From Fonticula alba ATCC 38817 (Eukaryota > Protista > Nucleariida), in NCBI GenBank assembly GCA_000388065.2, contig KB932203.1: a DNA stretch of 40,297 nt. One strand, given 5' to 3'. Within the stretch, counting starts at the first letter, position 1. The number at the start of each line of letters is the position of its first letter. Made by a program: the position numbers and the translations under genes. Positions 28,146-39,106 of this stretch are shown here, piece by piece. Below the pieces are notes generated by a model. That model was given only the letters and a program-made list of their open reading frames with translations. It was not told where the DNA came from and searched no databases.

Positions 28146-29787
28146 ACGCCACCCGCCACCTGGCACCGTCTCCCGCCGCCGCCCCGGTCCCTGGCGGGTT
28201 TCCCCCGGGGCACAGGCGGCCAGGCACGCCCTCACGGCACATACTCCCCCCCCAAAGCCCCGGAGCTCTCCCACCCCCGTCCCCCGCGCTCCTGTTGTAG
28301 CAGGCCGGCTCTTATCTGGCACCAAGCTCCGCCCCAGCGCACAGCCTGGCGCCCTGTCCCTGTCCCGGCATCCCGGTATTTAAGTGGGTGGACGCCGGTT
28401 GACCACCCCGCGAGGGGGGGTCCCGCACCCCTCGTTGAATGAGAGAAATATCCGCGCTGACCCCGGTGGGCCTGTTTTNNNNNNNNNNNNNNNNNNNNNN
28501 NNNNNNNNNNNNNNNNNNNNNNNNNNNNNNNNNNNNNNNNNNNNNNNNNNNNNNNNNNNNNNNNNNNNNNNNNNNNNNNNNNNNNNNNNNNNNNNNNNNN
28601 NNNNNNNNNNNNNNNNNNNNNNNNNNNNNNNNNNNNNNNNNNNNNNNNNNNNNNNNNNNNNNNNNNNNNNNNNNNNNNNNNNNNNNNNNNNNNNNNNNNN
28701 NNNNNNNNNNNNNNNNNNNNNNNNNNNNNNNNNNNNNNNNNNNNNNNNNNNNNNNNNNNNNNNNNNNNNNNNNNNNNNNNNNNNNNNNNNNNNNNNNNNN
28801 NNNNNNNNNNNNNNNNNNNNNNNNNNNNNNNNNNNNNNNNNNNNNNNNNNNNNNNNNNNNNNNNNNNNNNNNNNNNNNNNNNNNNNNNNNNNNNNNNNNN
28901 NNNNNNNNNNNNNNNNNNNNNNNNNNNNNNNNNNNNNNNNNNNNNNNNNNNNNNNNNNNNNNNNNNNNNNNNNNNNNNNNNNNNNNNNNNNNNNNNNNNN
29001 NNNNNNNNNNNNNNNNNNNNNNNNNNNNNNNNNNNNNNNNNNNNNNNNNNNNNNNNNNNNNNNNNNNNNNNNNNNNNNNNNNNNNNNNNNNNNNNNNNNN
29101 NNNNNNNNNNNNNNNNNNNNNNNNNNNNNNNNNNNNNNNNNNNNNNNNNNNNNNNNNNNNNNNNNNNNNNNNNNNNNNNNNNNNNNNNNNNNNNNNNNNN
29201 NNNNNNNNNNNNNNNNNNNNNNNNNNNNNNNNNNNNNNNNNNNNNNNNNNNNNNNNNNNNNNNNNNNNNNNNNNGCGGCGTCGGCCCGCGTGTACCCGCC
29301 GACGGCTGGCGGGCCTGTTGGCACCGGCCCGGCGGCCCCGGCGCCTTGGTGCTCGCCGGCCCGATCGTCCCCCCCCCCCCGCGCGGCTCGGTCGCGGGCC
29401 TCCCCGGTCCGCCCGCCCCGGGGGTGCGGGGCGTGTTCCCAGGCCGCCCGGGGGTGGCCGGCCGCGCCCCCATGCTGCCCTGGGCGGCGGCGGCCCGCGG
29501 CTTGCGCCCGCTCGCCGAGGGAGCCTCGCCCCCTGCTCCTCCTGCCCCACCGGGGGGAGGGTTATGCATCACTTGCTAAGGTGGGCATCTCGCGCCCTTG
29601 GGGCACACGCTGACCCCCCCCCCCCCCCCGCTCGCCCTCGGCCGCGTGTGTTCGCACGCGCCCGGATTTCCCCCGCCTGCTTCCACCGGCACACGCGTGT
29701 GTTCCCCGCCGCCGCCGCCGCCGCCGCCGCCACCGTCTGCCCCGGGCCGAATCGCAGGCTCGTGCCGCCCCGTCCCCACTCCCGCGA

Positions 29788-30052: not shown

Positions 30053-30505
30053 TTTCGCCGCGCTCGCTCACCCCGTCACGCCCTGCCCCTCCCCCCTTTC
30101 TGTCGTTCCAGAGCACAGCCCCCGCCATCCCTCCCCCCCTCGCCACCTTTTCCCCAGTCTCATGCTCCTTCGTCCGCGAGCTGAATCACGGTTTATGGTG
30201 TCTGCCAGTCAGCCTTCCGCAGCTCCCCCCCCGCCCCCTCTTGCCCGCCGCTGTCTTCGTCGTCACCCGTCGTTGTCCGCCGCGTCCCCCTGTTTTTGAG
30301 CCCCACCCTCTCGTCTCCCCCCTCCTTGTTTGTTAGTCCCCCCCCCCTCTTCCCCCTTTCCCCGCGAGTGCCTCTCCTTCCCCTCCCCCCCTTCGGAGCA
30401 CACGCCCTTCACACAAAGTAGCATCAACCATGTCCGTCAATATCAACCGTCAGATCGACGACATGTTCTACCGGTACAAGATGCCCAAGCTCACGTCTCG
30501 CGTGA
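29788..30505 (+). promoter_or_regulatory. Candidate spliced upstream ORF overlapping the eIF5 start codon
   Basis: ATG 29788-29790 is directly followed by a consensus donor GTGCGC. Splicing to the TAG acceptor at 30419-30421 gives an out-of-frame ORF ending at TGA 30503-30505. Confidence 0.45.
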
Positions 30506-31539
30506 CTGGCTCCGGTAACGGCATCAAGACCCTCCTGACGAACGTCGTCGAGGTTGCTCGCGCTCTCGAGCGCCCGCCCGCCTGTGCGTCGCCCCGCCCC
30601 TTCCGTGTCTCGCCTGCTCCATCGTATTCACCCTCACTCGGCCGTTTGTTCCCTTCGGGACTCCGCGCGCCATGTCCGTGCATGCGCGCGCGCGCGACAC
30701 GCACACCTCCAGACATTACCAAGTTCTTCGGCGGCGAGCTCGGTGCCCAGACCTCCATCGATGAGAAGACCGCCCGGTACATCGTCAACGGCGCTCACCA
30801 GACTTCCAAACTGGCCGACATCCTGGACATTTTCATCAAGCGCTTCGTCCTGTGCCCCTCTTGCTCCAACCCCGAGACCGCTGTTGTGCGTGTGCTGTTC
30901 TGGCCCCCCCCCCCCCCCCCCGTTGTTCCTTCCGGTCGTTCGCCCTGGCGGCATTCGGCCCCTTCATTCTCCGCGACCCTCCCCACCCCGCCCTCCCCCT
31001 TTCATGCATCATGCGCTCACACAGCTCACACCATACCCACCGTGCACACACACACACACCCACACATCTAGACGATCACCCGCAAGGGCGAGATCTTCCT
31101 TGCTTGCAAGGCCTGCGGCTCGCGCAACATGATCGACATGACCCATCGCCTGGTCCCCTACATCCTGCGCAACCCGCCTGATGGTGCCAGCGATGACACC
31201 CTCACTTCCTCTTCCGCCGGCAAGGAGGTCCGTCGGCTATCCCTGCCATTGCCGGGGCTCCCTCCCGCTCCCCCCCCTCCCCTGTTCCTTCCTGCACACA
31301 TTGACTCACGCACACGCGCACCGCATGTCACCGGCTTGGATCCGCCTTCGTAGAAGAAGCGCTCGTCCAAGTCCAAGGGCGAGACCGAGGAGGAGCGCCA
31401 GGCCCAGCGCCAGGCCCGGCGTGACGCCGCGCGCGCCCTGCGTGCCGGCGCCGCCGACGCCAAGGCCTCCGAGGACGCCGAGGACACCAAGGACGACCTG
31501 GAGACCACCGCCGGGTCCCCTGCCCTCATCAACACCTGA
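30430..31539 (+). CDS. EIF5: Eukaryotic translation initiation factor 5 (N-terminal GAP domain only, 222 aa)
   Basis: Exons 30430-30583, 30713-30885, 31072-31227 and 31354-31539. Sequence [21 protein letters not shown]...GSGNGIKT...[18 protein letters not shown]...YIVNGAH...[16 protein letters not shown]...CKACG is the eIF5 signature with a C4 zinc finger. Confidence 0.93.
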
Positions 31540-32142
31540 GCCACACGCCGCTGCCGCCTCTCGGCAGGCGCCTGGTGCTGGACCCCGAGGGCCGACCGCG
31601 TCGAGCACTTGCTGTGTGCTGTTGCCGGTTGCTCCCCCCCCCCCCCGCCTCGGCCCATGGATGTCGCGTTGATGGTTGTCAGCCACATTTCCCCCCCACC
31701 CCCCCCACATGCTCCTCCGCTGTCGCCCGTCAGCAGCAAGAAAGGGAGAGCGGCATGCGAGGAGATGCATAGAATTCGCTGACTGGTTGCGCGCGTGCGT
31801 CTACGGTCGTGGGCGCACACGCACACTTCTTCGCGCCCGATAATATACAATTACACAGCCCCCCTTCTCCTCCCCCCTGTCGGTGATATGTGTGCCTTCG
31901 CGGCGGTCTTTGGTGCAGGAGTGCGCGCCGCATGCACACAAAAGTGCCTCCCCCCAGAAGAAGCAAGAAACGAGAGGTAGGATCGGAGAAAGAGAGGAGA
32001 GAGGGAGGGGAAAAGAGGGGGTCTCCTTGTGCAGGAGACGTGTATTTTGCTAGCTCGGGCACGATCTACCGCCCTGATGCCGGGGGAGGGGAGCGGGAAG
32101 GGCCCGGGGTGCGGGTGAAACTCAAGGACAAGAAGGGAAGAT

Positions 32143-32173
<31 letters not shown>

Positions 32174-32418
32174 GGGGGGGGGCGGGGGGTCCACGCGAGG
32201 GCGAAGGGTGGGAGGGCATTTGTTGCCCGCTTAGCCCCCTGTCTTTCTCCCGGGGCGGGGCACAGGGAGAGAGAGAGAGAGAGAGGTGGCGGCGGCGACG
32301 GCGGCGAGGGGCAGGCGCAAGATCGACTGGCGGCGAGGATGGCGGGCCACGCGTCCAGCCGTGTCTGCCAATCCCCCCCCCCCTGCTCCACCTCGCACAC
32401 GCTGGTCCCGCGGCGGCA

Positions 32419-35400
32419 TCAGGAGGCCACCTGGTCTAGCACCGGCACATCCGGGCACCAGGTGCCCAGCCAGCCGGGCAGTCGGCCCGCGTGGACTTCA
32501 CGCGCGATCAGGACCTCTCGGCACCGGAGCAGCCACCGAGCGTCGGCCAGGGACAGGCGCGGCCGAGCGCCCAGCCCGGCCCCGGGCAGGTACGCATGCA
32601 GGTCGACGCCGGAGGCGGCGCGCGACAGCGGCCGCGGAGACCGCGGCGACCCGGGCGCCGAAGCCCATCCCGACCCGGGGGAGGGCGACGGCATGCCCCC
32701 GGCGGGGCTGGCGATGCCAGCCGCCGGCAGGGCATCCAGGAAGATGGCACCCGGATCGACGCCCGCCGGCGGGTCAGCCGGGAGGTCCGGTGCCAGGGGC
32801 GACCGCGGCGACACGTCCACCTTCTCCATGCCGGCGGGGCCGAAGGGAATCGGCGCAAGGACCGGCGAGGGGCCATTGGCCATGCCGGCCGTCCCTCCGC
32901 CGTGGGGGGCCATTTGGCGGCCCTCCTCCAGGACGGCCTCCGGCAGCAGGCCATTGTCCGGGAAGACCACCGCCGGGGAGAACATCCGCCAAAGGCTCCG
33001 CTCGGAGATGGCCACCACCAGGGCCAGGCCGTCCAGGCCGTCCAGCAGCCAGCCCAGGCGCCCCAGGGCCCCGGTCGAGTCGACGCACTTGCTCAGCGCC
33101 ACGGCCAGCTGCCCCGGGGCCCAGTGCAGCATGGACCCGGCCGGCACTTGGGCCAACGACAGCCGGGGATTGGCCACCAGCGAGGCCAGCAGCATGGCCC
33201 GGCTGGCCTGGCCGATGGACACCTGCCGGTGCCAGTACCAGCACAGCGAGGCGGGCCCCTGGATGCGCCCGGCGAAGTCGCCTGGCGTGAGGCCCGTCAG
33301 CAGGGCCAGGCGCGCGGCCTCCGGCAGGCCGACATCCAGCAGCCACCCGGCCAGCAGGGCCGGCAGTCGCGAGAGAGAGCGATGCGCGAAGAAGTCGATG
33401 TATGTCATGGCCGGTGTCAGGGCCCCGGCGTCGGTGAGGATGCGTAGATCGTGTTGCCGGACGCCGGCGCCGGCGGTGGCGACGCAATCCCCAAGCACAT
33501 CCGCCCCTCGGGGCTGCTTGGCCACCGGCGGGTCGTCCTGTGGGGAAGCAAGCCCGGCATCAGTGCCTCCTGGCAGGGCGGCCAGCAGGCGCATGCGCTC
33601 CGGTGTCAGGGCCGCCTCGGCGGCTTCCAGTTCATGTAGCATGGCGCCCAGCGCGTCCAGTGCATCGCGCCGGGCGATGAACGCCTGTGTGTCGGTAGCC
33701 AGGTGGAAGTATGACAGGCCTGGGCGACCGCGCGAGGAGGGGGCATCATATGTGTGTGTGTGTGTGTGTGTGTGTAGAGGTGTGTCAGGCATGCATGTGC
33801 GTGCGCGTGTGCGTGTGCGTGTGCACGAGTCAGCGCAGCACACAGGCAGGTGCACAGGAAGCAGCCAGGAGCCAAAGCAGGGGGCATCGAAGGGGGAGGG
33901 GGGGGGGGAGATAGGAACGCACGAGTGAACCCCCGGTAGAAAAGGACCTCCTCCAGCTCGGTCAGGCAGGCGTCCAGCGAGGTGTCGGCCGCGTGCCCGG
34001 CACCGGGGCACAGACAGAAGGCCACCCCGGCGTTGGAGGTGATCCGGGTCAGGACCGGCGGGTGCGCCAGAGCCGAGGCCGGATCGAAGTTGAAGGAGTT
34101 GTACACGCGATCGAACAAGTCGGCCACACGGGCCCGGCGGTGGACCAGCTGCCCGGGCAGGGTGGCGGCCAGGGTGTGGTCGTTGTCTGCGCGCCGAGGG
34201 GGGATGGTTTTGGATGGGACATTCAAAGAGGGAGAGAGAGAGAGAGAGAGGGCAAGAGTCGAGTCAGGAGCAGGCCCCCAAGCGGCAGCAGCCAAGCACC
34301 CGTGTCGGCCCGTGCAGCGAGGCGCCGGCAAAGGAGGTTCCCCCCCCCCCCCCCCCCTGCCCTCCTACGAGACCCGGACACACGCACCGGACAAGTTGCA
34401 GAAGGCAGCCCGGGCGCGCAGGTGCGCGGCCACCTGTGTCCGGACCACCTCGCCGGTGATGGGCCCCGGCATGTCCGGCAGGACGATGTCCGTCAGCGAG
34501 GCATAGCGGGCCAGCAGGGCCAGCAGGGCCCGGGCGCCGGCCGGCGTGAAGCGATTGCGCCCGAGGCTCACCCGGGTCAGGGAGGCCGCTCGCGGGGCCA
34601 GCACCTCCACCAGGCCGGCGGTCAGCAGGTCGCCCAGCTGCCCGGCGCGGATCTGGAAGGCCGTCAGCCCCGGGGCCCGGGCCAGCAGGTGCGCCAGCGC
34701 CCGGACCGTGCCCGAGGACAGGCCATTCTCCCCCAGGTGGAAGGCCTCCAGCCGGACCGGCGCCGCCAGGGCCGCGTCCGCCTCCGGGCCGGCGGCCAGG
34801 GCCAGCTCCCCGAGGCAGGCCCCGGGCCGGTGGCCAGCGGCCAGGTCGGCCCCGCCGCGCTCCTGCCCGGCCAGCAGCAGCCCGGCCAGCAGCAGGGCCA
34901 CATCCCCCGGGGCAAAGCCATTGCGCCCGAGGACGAAGCACCGCAGCCCCGGGGCCAAGCGCAGCAGGCGCTCGAAGGCCGCCACCGCCGGCGCCTCGGC
35001 CAGGACCCCGCGCCCGAGGAAGAGCTCGGCCAATTGGGCCAGGCGGCCGACGGCCGCCGGGGCCAGCCGCGCCGCCGGGTCCAAGTGCAGCGCACGCAGG
35101 CGCGAAGCGCTGCCCACCCGCAGGACCCCCACCAGGGCGGTCTCCTGGGCCGCGGTCGCTTGGGCCAGCGTCCCGCCCAGGAACAGGGCCTTGAGGGAGA
35201 CATTGCCGGCGAGGGCGGCCCAGAAGGCGCGCGCGGCGGCCATCGCCGCCGGCGGGGCCACCCCCGAGCAGGGGCCCACATACCGCCGGCCCAGGCGGCC
35301 CTCCAGCAGGGCCTCCCGCGCCAGGGCCCCGGAGCACGAGTGCCCATGCAGGTGCAAGTCCCGCAGGGAGATATTCCGCCCGAGGGCCTCGGCCGCCGCC

Positions 35401-36968
35401 AGGGCCAGCGGCCCCTCCAGCCCCGACAGGAAGACCCGCCGCAGGGATGACCGCAGGAGGATGGCATCGACCAGGGCCTCGGCCGGGTGCTCCTGCGCCG
35501 GCAGCTCCAGGCACAGGTGCCCGAGGGCGCGGGACGCCGGCCGGCGCTGGAGCAGGTCCAGCAGCCCGGCCAGGGCCCGGGAGCTGGAGCGCCCGGCACG
35601 CAGGGCCAGCACCCGGAGCCCGGCCGGGCCCTGGGCCGCCAGCGCCCCGGCCAGCTGCCGGCCCAGCTCCGGATCCAAGATCACACAGTCGCCATCGCTG
35701 CGGCCGGCCAGGGACAGGTGCAGCAGCCGGCCCTGGCAGATGGCCAATGCCCCGGCCAGCAGGCACCCGGCCATCGGGTCCAGGCGCACGGCGCCCAGGC
35801 GCAGGGTGCGCAGCTCGGCCCCGGCATCGAGCCCGGCCGCCAGGCAATTCAACGACCCGCCAGCGTGAAGAGCCCCCCCGGGGAGGGCCACCGTGGCCAG
35901 ATGCCGGTGCCGGGCCACGGCACGCAGGAAGACCCCCACATGCGGGTCATCGGCTTCGGCCGGATGGCCGGCCGGGTGGGTGGCCGGCCGGTGCGAGCAG
36001 GCGCCCGGGCCCCGGGCAGGACCGGCGCCCGGCGGCTGGCCCTCCAGGCGCAGGTGGCTGGTCTGCCCCCGGCGAAGCACCGGGGCCAGGGCCACGCGCG
36101 CGCCCTCCGCCGTCAGGCCCAGGTGCGCCAGCCAGACGCACCGGAGCGGCAAGGCGGCGCCGCCGGCGCCGGGCCCCGCCATGTCCGCCACCGGGCCCGG
36201 GCGATCGACCATGGCCCGGCACACGGCCGACAGCCCGGGCCCGCGGAGGCCGCGCTCGGCCAGCACCAACGACCGGAGGTCCGCCCGGGAGCGCAGGGCC
36301 GCCAGCAAATCCTCCAGCCCGGAGTGCCCGGCCCCCGGGGTCAAGGCCCCGGGGCCGGCGTCGATCACCAGCTCGGCCAGGCCCGACGCGCCGACATGCT
36401 GGAAAAGCCGGGTCGCGGCCTCCGGCGTCAGGCCGGCCCCTTCGCCCAGCACCAGGCACCGGAGGTCCTGGCCTCGGGCCGACGCCAGCAGGCTCAGCAG
36501 CGCGTGCAGCCCCTCCGGGCCCAGGTCATTCCCCGGGCCGATGTACAGGAAGGGGATGAGGCACCGCCGGGTGAGCTCCGGCAGGGGGTCCGCCTCCGGG
36601 GGCCCGGCCGGCCGGCGCGCCGCCCTGGCCAGGTCGCCGGATCGCGCGTGCATCTGCCGGGTGCGCGGGCAGAAGACCGCGCTGAAGCAGGGCCCGTCGA
36701 CCGGGACCCCGGCCAGCGAGCCGACCATGGCCGGCGGGGCCCCGGGCGAGATGCCCCCGGCCGAGAGCGGGCTCGCCGGCATCAGGGCCCCGGACCCCAG
36801 CAGCAGCGCCGCATAGTCCTGGGCCGTGCGCGTCAGCACATCGTCCAGCAGGGCCGGATCGGCCACATCATCCAGCGTGGCGCCCGGGGGGATGGCCCGC
36901 GGCCGGGCGGCCGCCTGGCCGAGAAAGCCCCGCAGCTCCGAGGCCGCGGTCGCGTCGTCGGAGCTCAT
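32419..36968 (-). CDS. Large RNI-like leucine-rich-repeat protein with an uncharacterised C-terminal region (~1381 aa)
   Basis: Exons 36968-34388, 34186-33923 and 33719-32419. Both introns have GTGCGT...CAG and phase 1, joining three ORFs of the track into one frame. LRR units include LRCLVLGEGAGLT, LRSLVLAERGL, LRDLHLHGHSC, LRCFVLGRNGF, LEAFHLGENGL and LTRVSLGRNRF. The start codon is inferred. Confidence 0.75.
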
Positions 36969-39106
36969 GTGCGAGGGAGGGCGCGGCGCGCGGGCGTATG
37001 TGCGCGCGTGTGGTCGTTGGTGCAAGAGGGGGAATGTGTGTGTGTGCGGAGGGAAGGAAGAGAAGATGTGTGCGCGCGCGTGCGTGCAGCGAGGGGGCGG
37101 GTGAGCGAGCAAAGGAGAGGAGGAGATGGGAGGGGAGAGGGAGGGAGAGGGAGGGAGAGAGAGAGGAAAGTGCGCGGTGGCCCCCGGCGGCGGGGGCGGA
37201 TCGGGCTGGCCGAAGAAGGCGTCGCCCGCGGCCGGCGATCTGTCGTCTGGCCCCCCTGGGCGGCGGGGCCAGGGGCGCCGGGTCCCCGGGCATGGGCGCG
37301 CTCCGACGCCTGGGCGGGGGGGGGGGGCCGCGCCGGACCCGGGGGGTTGCGCGTGCGCGCGCCCCGGCTACGAGCCGGCCTCGCCGCGGGCCCGCCGCTT
37401 GTGGGGGAATGTGCCGGTGAGCGTCGGCCCACAACGAGGGCGGGGGATCCCTGCTGCCCCGCCGCCCTTCCCCGCGCCCCCGTGCCGGTGCCGGTCTCTG
37501 GCGTGCCCGTAATCCTCGCTTCGATCAGGGGGGGGGGGGGGCGTGGACACCTTCGTACAAGCGACGCGCCCGCGCTCACGGATCCGTCTGGGTGCGCGCG
37601 TGTGTGTGTGTGTGTGTGGTCATGCCCCCGGATCATCGTCTTGTGGCTGGTGCCCATGCCACCGAGAGCGGCCCCNNNNNNNNNNNNNNNNNNNNNNNNN
37701 NNNNNNNNNNNNNNNNNNNNNNNNNNNNNNNNNNNNNNNNNNNNNNNNNNNNNNNNNNNNNNNNNNNNNNNNNNNNNNNNNNNNNNNNNNNNNNNNNNNN
37801 NNNNNNNNNNNNNNNNNNNNNNNNNNNNNNNNNNNNNNNNNNNNNNNNNNNNNNNNNNNNNNNNNNNNNNNNNNNNNNNNNNNNNNNNNNNNNNNNNNNN
37901 NNNNNNNNNNNNNNNNNNNNNNNNNNNNNNNNNNNNNNNNNNNNNNNNNNNNNNNNNNNNNNNNNNNNNNNNNNNNNNNNNNNNNNNNNNNNNNNNNNNN
38001 NNNNNNNNNNNNNNNNNNNNNNNNNNNNNNNNNNNNNNNNNNNNNNNNNNNNNNNNNNNNNNNNNNNNNNNNNNNNNNNNNNNNNNNNNNNNNNNNNNNN
38101 NNNNNNNNNNNNNNNNNNNNNNNNNNNNNNNNNNNNNNNNNNNNNNNNNNNNNNNNNNNNNNNNNNNNNNNNNNNNNNNNNNNNNNNNNNNNNNNNNNNN
38201 NNNNNNNNNNNNNNNNNNNNNNNNNNNNNNNNNNNNNNNNNNNNNNNNNNNNNNNNNNNNNNNNNNNNNNNNNNNNNNNNNNNNNNNNNNNNNNNNNNNN
38301 NNNNNNNNNNNNNNNNNNNNNNNNNNNNNNNNNNNNNNNNNNNNNNNNNNNNNNNNNNNNNNNNNNNNNNNNNNNNNNNNNNNNNNNNNNNNNNNNNNNN
38401 NNNNNNNNNNNNNNNNNNNNNNNNNNNNNNNNNNNNNNNNNNNNNNNNNNNNNNNNNNNNNNNNNNNNNNNNNNNNNNNNNNNNNNNNNNNNNNNNNNNN
38501 NNNNNNNNNNNNNNNNNNNNNNNNNNNNNNNNNNNNNNNNNNNNNNNNNNNNNNNNNNNNNNNNNNNNNNNNNNNNCCCCCCCCCCCTCCCCGCTGTGGG
38601 CGTTCGTCGGTGTCCGTTACAGCGGCGCCCACGGGCGTGTGCCAGCGCGAACGCGAGCGTGCCCGGCATCCCGGCGCGGCTCGGGCGCACGGCCCTTCTC
38701 CGCCCCATGCGTGCGCGCTCACCCAGGTGCCCACCCGCCCCGACGCGCCGGGACGCCGCTCGCCCTCATGGACGAGTCAAGGGAAATCCCTGCCCGTCCC
38801 TGGGCCTGGCGCGCGGCGCCGAAGCTCGCCCCCTCCCCCCCCCCCCACGGGAGCCGCCTTCCATGGAAAGGCTGGTCGTTCCCCGCGTCCCCCGCCTGCC
38901 GGGGACACCAAAGGGATAAGGAACCACGGCGGGACGGGACATTCCGCCGCCCGCCCGCCCCCTTCCTCGGCAACGGGGCCGGTTTGCCGGGCCGACCGGC
39001 CGGAGCAGCGGCACCTCCCCCTGGGGCTATTTTTTCGCGAACGCGCGCGCCCCGTCGGCAGGCTCATCTCCGCCGAATGTTCGCCTGCACAGCGGCTGGG
39101 TGGTGC

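Follow-up and report, generated by a model that had tools for sequence, protein, structure and literature searches.

Canonical eIF5, as represented by TIF5 of yeast and EIF5 of human, is a protein of about 380-480 aa in which a GAP/zinc domain at the N-terminus is accompanied by the DWEAR motif and a W2/HEAT domain (PF02020). Structures of the N-terminal domain have been determined in isolation (2G2K, 2E9H) and on the 48S complex (6FYX, 8PJ2), and this is the part of the factor that is seen by cryo-EM on the 40S subunit, where eIF1 gives way to it once the start codon has been recognized (PMC12224906). The C-terminal domain, which binds the K-boxes of eIF2-beta as well as eIF3c, eIF1, and eIF1A, cannot be seen in the yeast and mammalian complexes (PMC12224906). 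In yeast, it is crucial for the integrity of the multifactor complex, and its mutations impair initiation in vivo (PMC13055193). In one single-molecule study, mammalian eIF5 was proposed to arrive only once the start codon has been selected (PMC12224906). Start-codon stringency is known to vary with the level of eIF5 (PMC3326321).

The eIF5 of Fonticula alba described here has in common with the canonical factor the GAP/zinc domain with R15, K33, K55, and four cysteines, as well as the Lys-rich segment that follows it, but it is only 222 aa long and lacks both PF02020 and the DWEAR motif. In that, it is the counterpart of the 5MP/BZW proteins, which have the opposite half, i.e. a W2/HEAT domain without the GAP, whereas the Fonticula protein has the GAP without W2; both are one-domain relatives of eIF5 and both would be expected to shift start-codon stringency (PMC4176352, PMC12224906). 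The eIF2-beta and aIF2-beta proteins, too, have the PF01873 fold and a zinc ribbon, and the archaeal aIF2-beta is also short and devoid of W2. The match to eIF2-beta is far weaker, however, and the eIF5-specific N-terminal GAP segment (FYRYKMP, with R15) is present in the Fonticula protein.

Gene model and locus

The window, that is, the whole stretch of 40,297 nucleotides that was analysed, consists of GC-rich eukaryotic DNA, in which introns are short and of the GT..AG type. It is interrupted by eight N gaps of 61-901 nt, poly-C and poly-G runs are numerous, CA/GA microsatellites occur as well, and most of the 1-kb bins in which the GC fraction goes down to 0.33-0.47 contain the larger N gaps. 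The coding exons of the eIF5 gene (30430-30583, 30713-30885, 31072-31227, and 31354-31539), bordered by GT..AG throughout, give a spliced reading frame of 669 nt for 222 aa. The 222-aa spliced ORF of the initial annotation was thus reproduced by our own splicing, and the product is identical to the NCBI protein P0001, "translation initiation factor 5 [Fonticula alba]", of 222 aa, the gene of which is located on a 3.6-Mb NCBI scaffold. P0001 was also the top match of a word search with a 213-aa ORF that includes intron 1, and the same gene model is found in the NCBI record KB932203.1 of assembly GCA_000388065.2. The features of the locus are as follows.

30338-30429, plus strand: 5' UTR without AUG; its extent is as far as the RNA contigs reach
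30430-30583, plus strand: coding part of exon 1, residues 1-51 and one base; GAP segment with R15 and K33; joint 30583/30713 in 4/4 RNA runs
30584-30712, plus strand: intron 1, 129 nt, GT..AG, in frame and stop-free; joint in RNA contigs
30713-30885, plus strand: exon 2, with K55, C99, and C102
30886-31071, plus strand: intron 2, 186 nt, GT..AG; implied by adjoining RNA pieces
31072-31227, plus strand: exon 3, with C121, C124, the end of the folded domain, and an NPP motif
31228-31353, plus strand: intron 3, 126 nt, GT..AG; RNA joint 31225/31352 (cut +2) in 4/4 runs
31354-31539, plus strand: coding part of exon 4, residues 162-222, in turn Lys-rich, Arg/Ala-rich, and acidic; TGA at 31537-31539
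31540-31663, plus strand: 3' UTR covered by RNA, contiguous with exon 4; end at 31663 in 4/4 runs
31664-32418, no strand: intergenic low-complexity stretch with poly-C, poly-G, and GA/CA repeats; no W2-like coding by three-frame translation, tblastn, or HMM

When intron 1 (30584-30712) is left unspliced, the 213-aa ORF results, in which exons 1 and 2 are bridged by 43 Pro/Ser/Arg-rich codons; the RNA contigs contain the spliced form only. The distance from the stop of eIF5 (31539) to that of its convergent neighbor (32419) is 880 bp. This neighbor occupies 32419-36968 on the minus strand and is annotated as a protein of 1381 aa with no Pfam hit on record; its long minus-strand ORFs are Ala/Leu/Gly-rich and had been described as LRR-like in the initial annotation, and RNA contigs of the runs X1 and X2 lie over its 3' end, beginning at about 32373. 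N gaps come nearest at 28479-29274 and 37676-38576, with none on the eIF5 gene or on its 3' flank; the earlier statement that there is no gap here therefore holds for at least 1.1 kb upstream and 6 kb downstream of the gene.

The conserved N-terminal domain

PF01873 is the sole Pfam family detected in the 222-aa protein (E 3.7e-26). The domain begins at residue 1, there being no N-terminal extension, and the N-terminal K-boxes of the eIF2-beta type are absent. Among solved structures, the chains of human eIF5 (9h6y, 8pj2, 8oz0, and the N-terminal domains 2g2k and 2e9h) are matched at 3e-59 to 2e-57 and those of yeast eIF5 (6fyx and 6zu9, both of 48S complexes) at about 2e-51, with the matches spanning residues 1 to about 150-174, whereas the chains of eIF2-beta and aIF2-beta are matched at about 1e-12 only. 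It follows from this difference that the protein is an eIF5 and not an eIF2-beta.

In an alignment of the Fonticula protein with 11 other eIF5s (alignment A2), R15, K33, and K55 as well as the cysteines C99, C102, C121, and C124 occupy invariant columns, which bears out what had been said initially of the GAP residues; likewise, the C4 zinc finger is intact as described, its region being modeled at pLDDT 85-90. The AlphaFold2 model made from an alignment of 12 sequences is folded over residues 20-150, with block pLDDT values of 79-90. Over residues 8-148, the mean identity to 17 diverse eIF5s amounts to 56.5%, as compared to 49-63% for the means of those proteins themselves, and the only departures from near-invariant columns in the N-terminal domain are K24R and E26T. 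Residues 1-150 constitute an entire and conserved eIF5 N-terminal domain, in which the Arg15 finger, K33, K55, and the C4 zinc ribbon are all present; this domain is under normal constraint, being as conserved as in other lineages.

Absence of the W2/HEAT domain and of the DWEAR motif

No Pfam match to PF02020 was obtained in the 222-aa protein, and the last exon, which encodes 61 residues, contains no Pfam family above threshold. The absence extends to the surrounding DNA: tblastn with nine eIF5 homologues, several of which carry W2, matched only exons 1-3 within the 40-kb window, and a profile built from five eIF5 C-terminal domains found no W2-like coding in the six-frame translation of the whole window with filters off. 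The initial annotation had reported none in the 880 bp that separate the gene from its convergent neighbor, and that result can thus be widened to the window as a whole. It had also remarked on a tail without Trp; in fact, the entire Fonticula eIF5 contains not a single Trp residue.

For the tail, which is about 70 residues long, disorder is predicted, with pLDDT values of 42-57 over residues 151-222 and a single weak helix at 174-188 in the AlphaFold2 model. In the alignment, it opens with a Lys-rich stretch, as is seen after the N-terminal domain of ordinary eIF5s, and in this respect the tail resembles the start of a normal eIF5 linker. The end of the protein falls at about the point at which the DWEAR motif and the HEAT domain would start, which is also what would be expected if the gene had broken within the linker and the W2/HEAT half now resided in a separate gene, alone or fused to other domains. 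Such a split of eIF5, in which the separate W2 protein would bind eIF2-beta and eIF3c and work non-covalently with the GAP module, is a tentative possibility, which is taken up again below together with the searches for the missing half.

The DWEAR motif was searched for with a profile of 30 columns derived from 57 full-length eIF5s. One of these 57 sequences (P0152), which was also included in one Pfam scan and in the composition table, looks like a mammalian, possibly human, eIF5 that has been read into junk; it did not serve as a query in any search. The tail scored -2.7 bits, as compared to -2.75 +/- 5.1 for shuffled versions of it, and 1386 of 2000 shuffles scored equally well or better. 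As the tail does no better than its shuffles, the motif is not detectably present, in agreement with the earlier claim that the DWEAR linker motif is missing. Two candidate remnants were considered and rejected, since the motif profile gave no signal above the shuffles: the placement by MAFFT and phmmer of "...KDDLETTAG" against "DDW.VDTS.EA", and a likeness of the tail, seen by eye, to "DTSEEAVRAR".

A likeness of a different kind was seen in a 592-aa eIF5 (P0164), where residues 191-258 align with residues 150-215 of P0001 and the linker segment GETEEAYRERRAAEKAARRLERAA resembles the Fonticula tail; phmmer reports this as a second domain, at 7.2 bits and E 0.0011. It may reflect a basic helix that recurs in eIF5 linkers, or else mere shared composition.

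Transcripts of the eIF5 gene

Transcript contigs were available from four runs (X1-X4), which represent two samples of one 2012 study; being assembled, such contigs may drop rare isoforms and give no proof of the transcript end. Of the words sampled from positions 30300-32400, about a third occur in the four runs, and each of the runs contains one eIF5 contig, of 838-885 nt, that covers 30338-30583, 30713-30885, 31073-31225, and 31352-31663. Since the introns are absent from these contigs, the runs are RNA. Intron 2 is not a recorded joint, its row having been dropped owing to a repeat; it is implied by the pieces 30713-30885 and 31073-31225, which adjoin at positions 419 and 421 of the RNA record.

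At the 5' end, the contigs start at 30338 (X1 and X2), 30345 (X3), and 30385 (X4). They may break at the poly-C run 30330-30337, and the true end of the eIF5 transcript may lie upstream. The leader 30338-30429 is without AUG, and no RNA contig supports a longer, spliced, uORF-bearing leader.

At the 3' end, the contigs are colinear with the genome across the TGA at 31537-31539 and for 124 nt beyond it, with no differences or indels listed, and they end at 31663 in 4/4 runs. Between 31664 and about 32372 there is no substantial RNA contig, merely 23-nt low-complexity matches at 31985-32007, and no splice from the eIF5 mRNA to downstream W2 exons occurs in the contigs of the four runs. Given this colinearity through the stop, and with nothing substantial downstream, neither splicing to W2 exons nor a sequence error at the stop, the two ways in which, according to the initial annotation, the truncation could have proven false, is seen in the RNA contigs of the four runs, and the truncation has thus survived.

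Two further ways around the stop codon were considered. An alternative donor at 31511 (GG/GTCCCC), the use of which would remove the stop, is a weak candidate and was rejected, all of the RNA contigs passing straight through it. Readthrough of the stop, which stands in the context TGA-GCC, was likewise rejected: the downstream frame reads as junk that is rich in Cys, Trp, and Pro, and 124 nt further on the mRNA contig comes to its end.

These data also bear on the possibility that the short protein is an artefact or the product of a dying gene, i.e. that it results from wrong assembly, from an error in sequencing, or from a truncation that occurred recently and is turning the gene into a pseudogene. 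The assembly is a draft with its eight N gaps in the window, and low-complexity runs flank the eIF5 gene. However, the sequence is free of gaps for 1.1 kb on the upstream side and 6 kb on the downstream side of the gene, no differences or indels from the genome are listed for the RNA contigs of two samples, which follow it through the stop, and the gene is transcribed and correctly spliced, with an N-terminal domain under normal constraint. An artefact or a decaying gene is, therefore, highly improbable.

Relatives and other short forms of eIF5

An exhaustive phmmer search over 1.84 billion representatives yielded 3722 matches. The comparison with relatives, which had been proposed in the initial annotation, shows that the nearest non-self eIF5s are 52-57% identical and mostly 380-480 aa long, and PF02020 is present in all of the scanned relatives that are longer than 400 aa (6/6). 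The closest sequences thus have the full-length architecture as a rule, and the short form of Fonticula is derived. In the two closest full-length relatives (P0130 and P0132, loci L003 and L002, the sequences of which come from Logan runs), Phe takes the place of the DWEAR Trp, as seen in DDAFSVDTSEAA and NEEFTVDEATLKAA.

Short forms that share with the Fonticula protein an eIF5-like N-terminal domain without W2 are found in three other settings. The first is a cluster of salmonid proteins of 226-230 aa, comprising the cDNA-derived protein ACM09539.1 of Salmo salar and predicted entries in other salmonids; their tails look, on our reading of the alignment, like read-through junk, and salmonids also have a full-length eIF5. 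The second is a 222-aa eIF5 ORF of Colponema vietnamica, labeled as complete in a single transcriptome. The third was found in the ESM Atlas, where the nearest feature-level clusters are PF01873-only, with 172 and 216 aa and 132 and 409 members, respectively; their commonest labeled phylum is Nucleocytoviricota, and they are look-alikes at the level of features only. Giant viruses may, accordingly, carry eIF5/eIF2-beta-like proteins that consist of the N-terminal domain only. Unlike these other short forms, the short protein of Fonticula is the annotated eIF5 of the organism.

The salmonid and Colponema proteins are relevant to another explanation, namely, that the 222-aa protein is a paralogue or short form with the GAP only, next to which a full-length eIF5 is encoded elsewhere, and that it would tune start-codon stringency in competition with eIF1 or the full-length factor. 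In salmonids, a form of 230 aa with the N-terminal domain only is supported by cDNA and coexists with full-length eIF5, the Colponema transcriptome also has such a form (222 aa), and start-codon stringency is known to vary with the level of eIF5 (PMC3326321). On the other hand, the NCBI name of the Fonticula protein is translation initiation factor 5, and its N-terminal domain is conserved like that of orthologues elsewhere. Together with the outcome of the searches described in the following section, this makes a paralogue of this kind unlikely.

Search for a second eIF5 or a separate W2 protein

The exhaustive phmmer search of the 1.84 billion representatives returned no close Fonticula paralogue. 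As the best non-self matches reach 52-57% identity only, there is no recent paralogue. From the best 150 relatives, 30 representatives were named, including the 20 richest in Ala/Gly/Pro/Arg, and no second Fonticula eIF5 was among them (0/30 from Fonticula). The most Ala-rich candidate, a full-length eIF5 of 522 aa (P0186), was considered as a possible second Fonticula gene and rejected, on composition only: the codons of its contig (ATT, GCA, GGG) are clearly unlike those of Fonticula, and its run of origin is an unrelated one. All of these results count, as weak negatives, against a paralogue beside a full-length eIF5.

With regard to a separate W2 half, the five-sequence C-terminal-domain profile gave 86 matches of 85-271 aa, and a query with residues 330-476 of P0244 gave just 6 matches of 302-960 aa, with no Fonticula protein in either set; these are weak negatives, as the searches need shared 5-residue words. 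A look-up in the Atlas found no cluster that combines RRM/CCCH with W2. These outcomes speak, at that limited strength, against the split of eIF5 considered above, the place at which the protein ends being a point in its favor.

A probable stand-alone GAP module

Since the N-terminal domain is conserved, expressed, and provided with all of the catalytic residues, the simplest reading of the 222-aa protein is that of a working GAP and eIF1-displacing module. That the eIF5 gene of Fonticula alba produces a stand-alone GAP module that serves as the working eIF5 GAP of the cell is considered probable. This assessment divides about evenly between two versions, neither of which can be held with more than tentative confidence on its own: one in which the C-terminal function is supplied in trans by a W2 protein and one in which the W2 function has been lost outright. 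Such a loss had not been listed in the initial annotation, and it is as likely as either of the two models given there, the GAP-only paralogue and the split eIF5. It is correspondingly possible, if somewhat doubtful, that Fonticula alba is without any eIF5-type C-terminal domain genome-wide and that the 222-aa GAP module is its only eIF5.

In the proposed model of the stand-alone GAP module, which draws on what is known of other eIF5 N-terminal domains, the Fonticula protein would stimulate GTP hydrolysis by eIF2 and would take the site on the 40S subunit that is vacated by eIF1 upon AUG recognition. On its way to the ribosome, it would have to dispense with a covalently linked C-terminal domain and, hence, with the usual bridge to eIF2-beta, eIF3c, and eIF1 within the multifactor complex. 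Its recruitment might then occur by mass action after start-codon recognition or might be aided by a W2 protein encoded elsewhere. It has to be noted that, because the C-terminal domain is crucial in yeast (PMC13055193), a cell with only the 222-aa eIF5 would be a surprise.

Significance

The 222-aa protein has already been public under the name eIF5, and a full-text literature search found no papers on Fonticula eIF5 or its truncation. This eIF5 without W2 is a solid, expressed, and unusual variant. It would represent a very unusual initiation system only if there is no second eIF5 and no separate C-terminal half elsewhere in the genome; should it contain a full-length copy elsewhere, all that would be left is a short paralogue with a possible role in the tuning of start-codon stringency.

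The interest of the locus derives from the position that the C-terminal domain of yeast eIF5 is given as the hub of the multifactor complex, in which it contacts eIF2-beta, eIF3c, eIF1, and eIF1A (PMC13055193, PMC12224906). The time at which eIF5 joins the scanning complex and the role that its C-terminal domain has there are questions with which this eIF5 would help. If no eIF5-type C-terminal domain exists genome-wide, Fonticula would initiate translation without an eIF5-nucleated multifactor complex and without the GDI activity of eIF5. If the domain has indeed been lost, the organism would provide a natural test of which of the C-terminal functions of eIF5 a free-living eukaryote can spare. 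Fonticula, a free-living relative of fungi, would thus offer either a natural separation-of-function mutant of eIF5 or a split factor, the halves of which can be studied separately.
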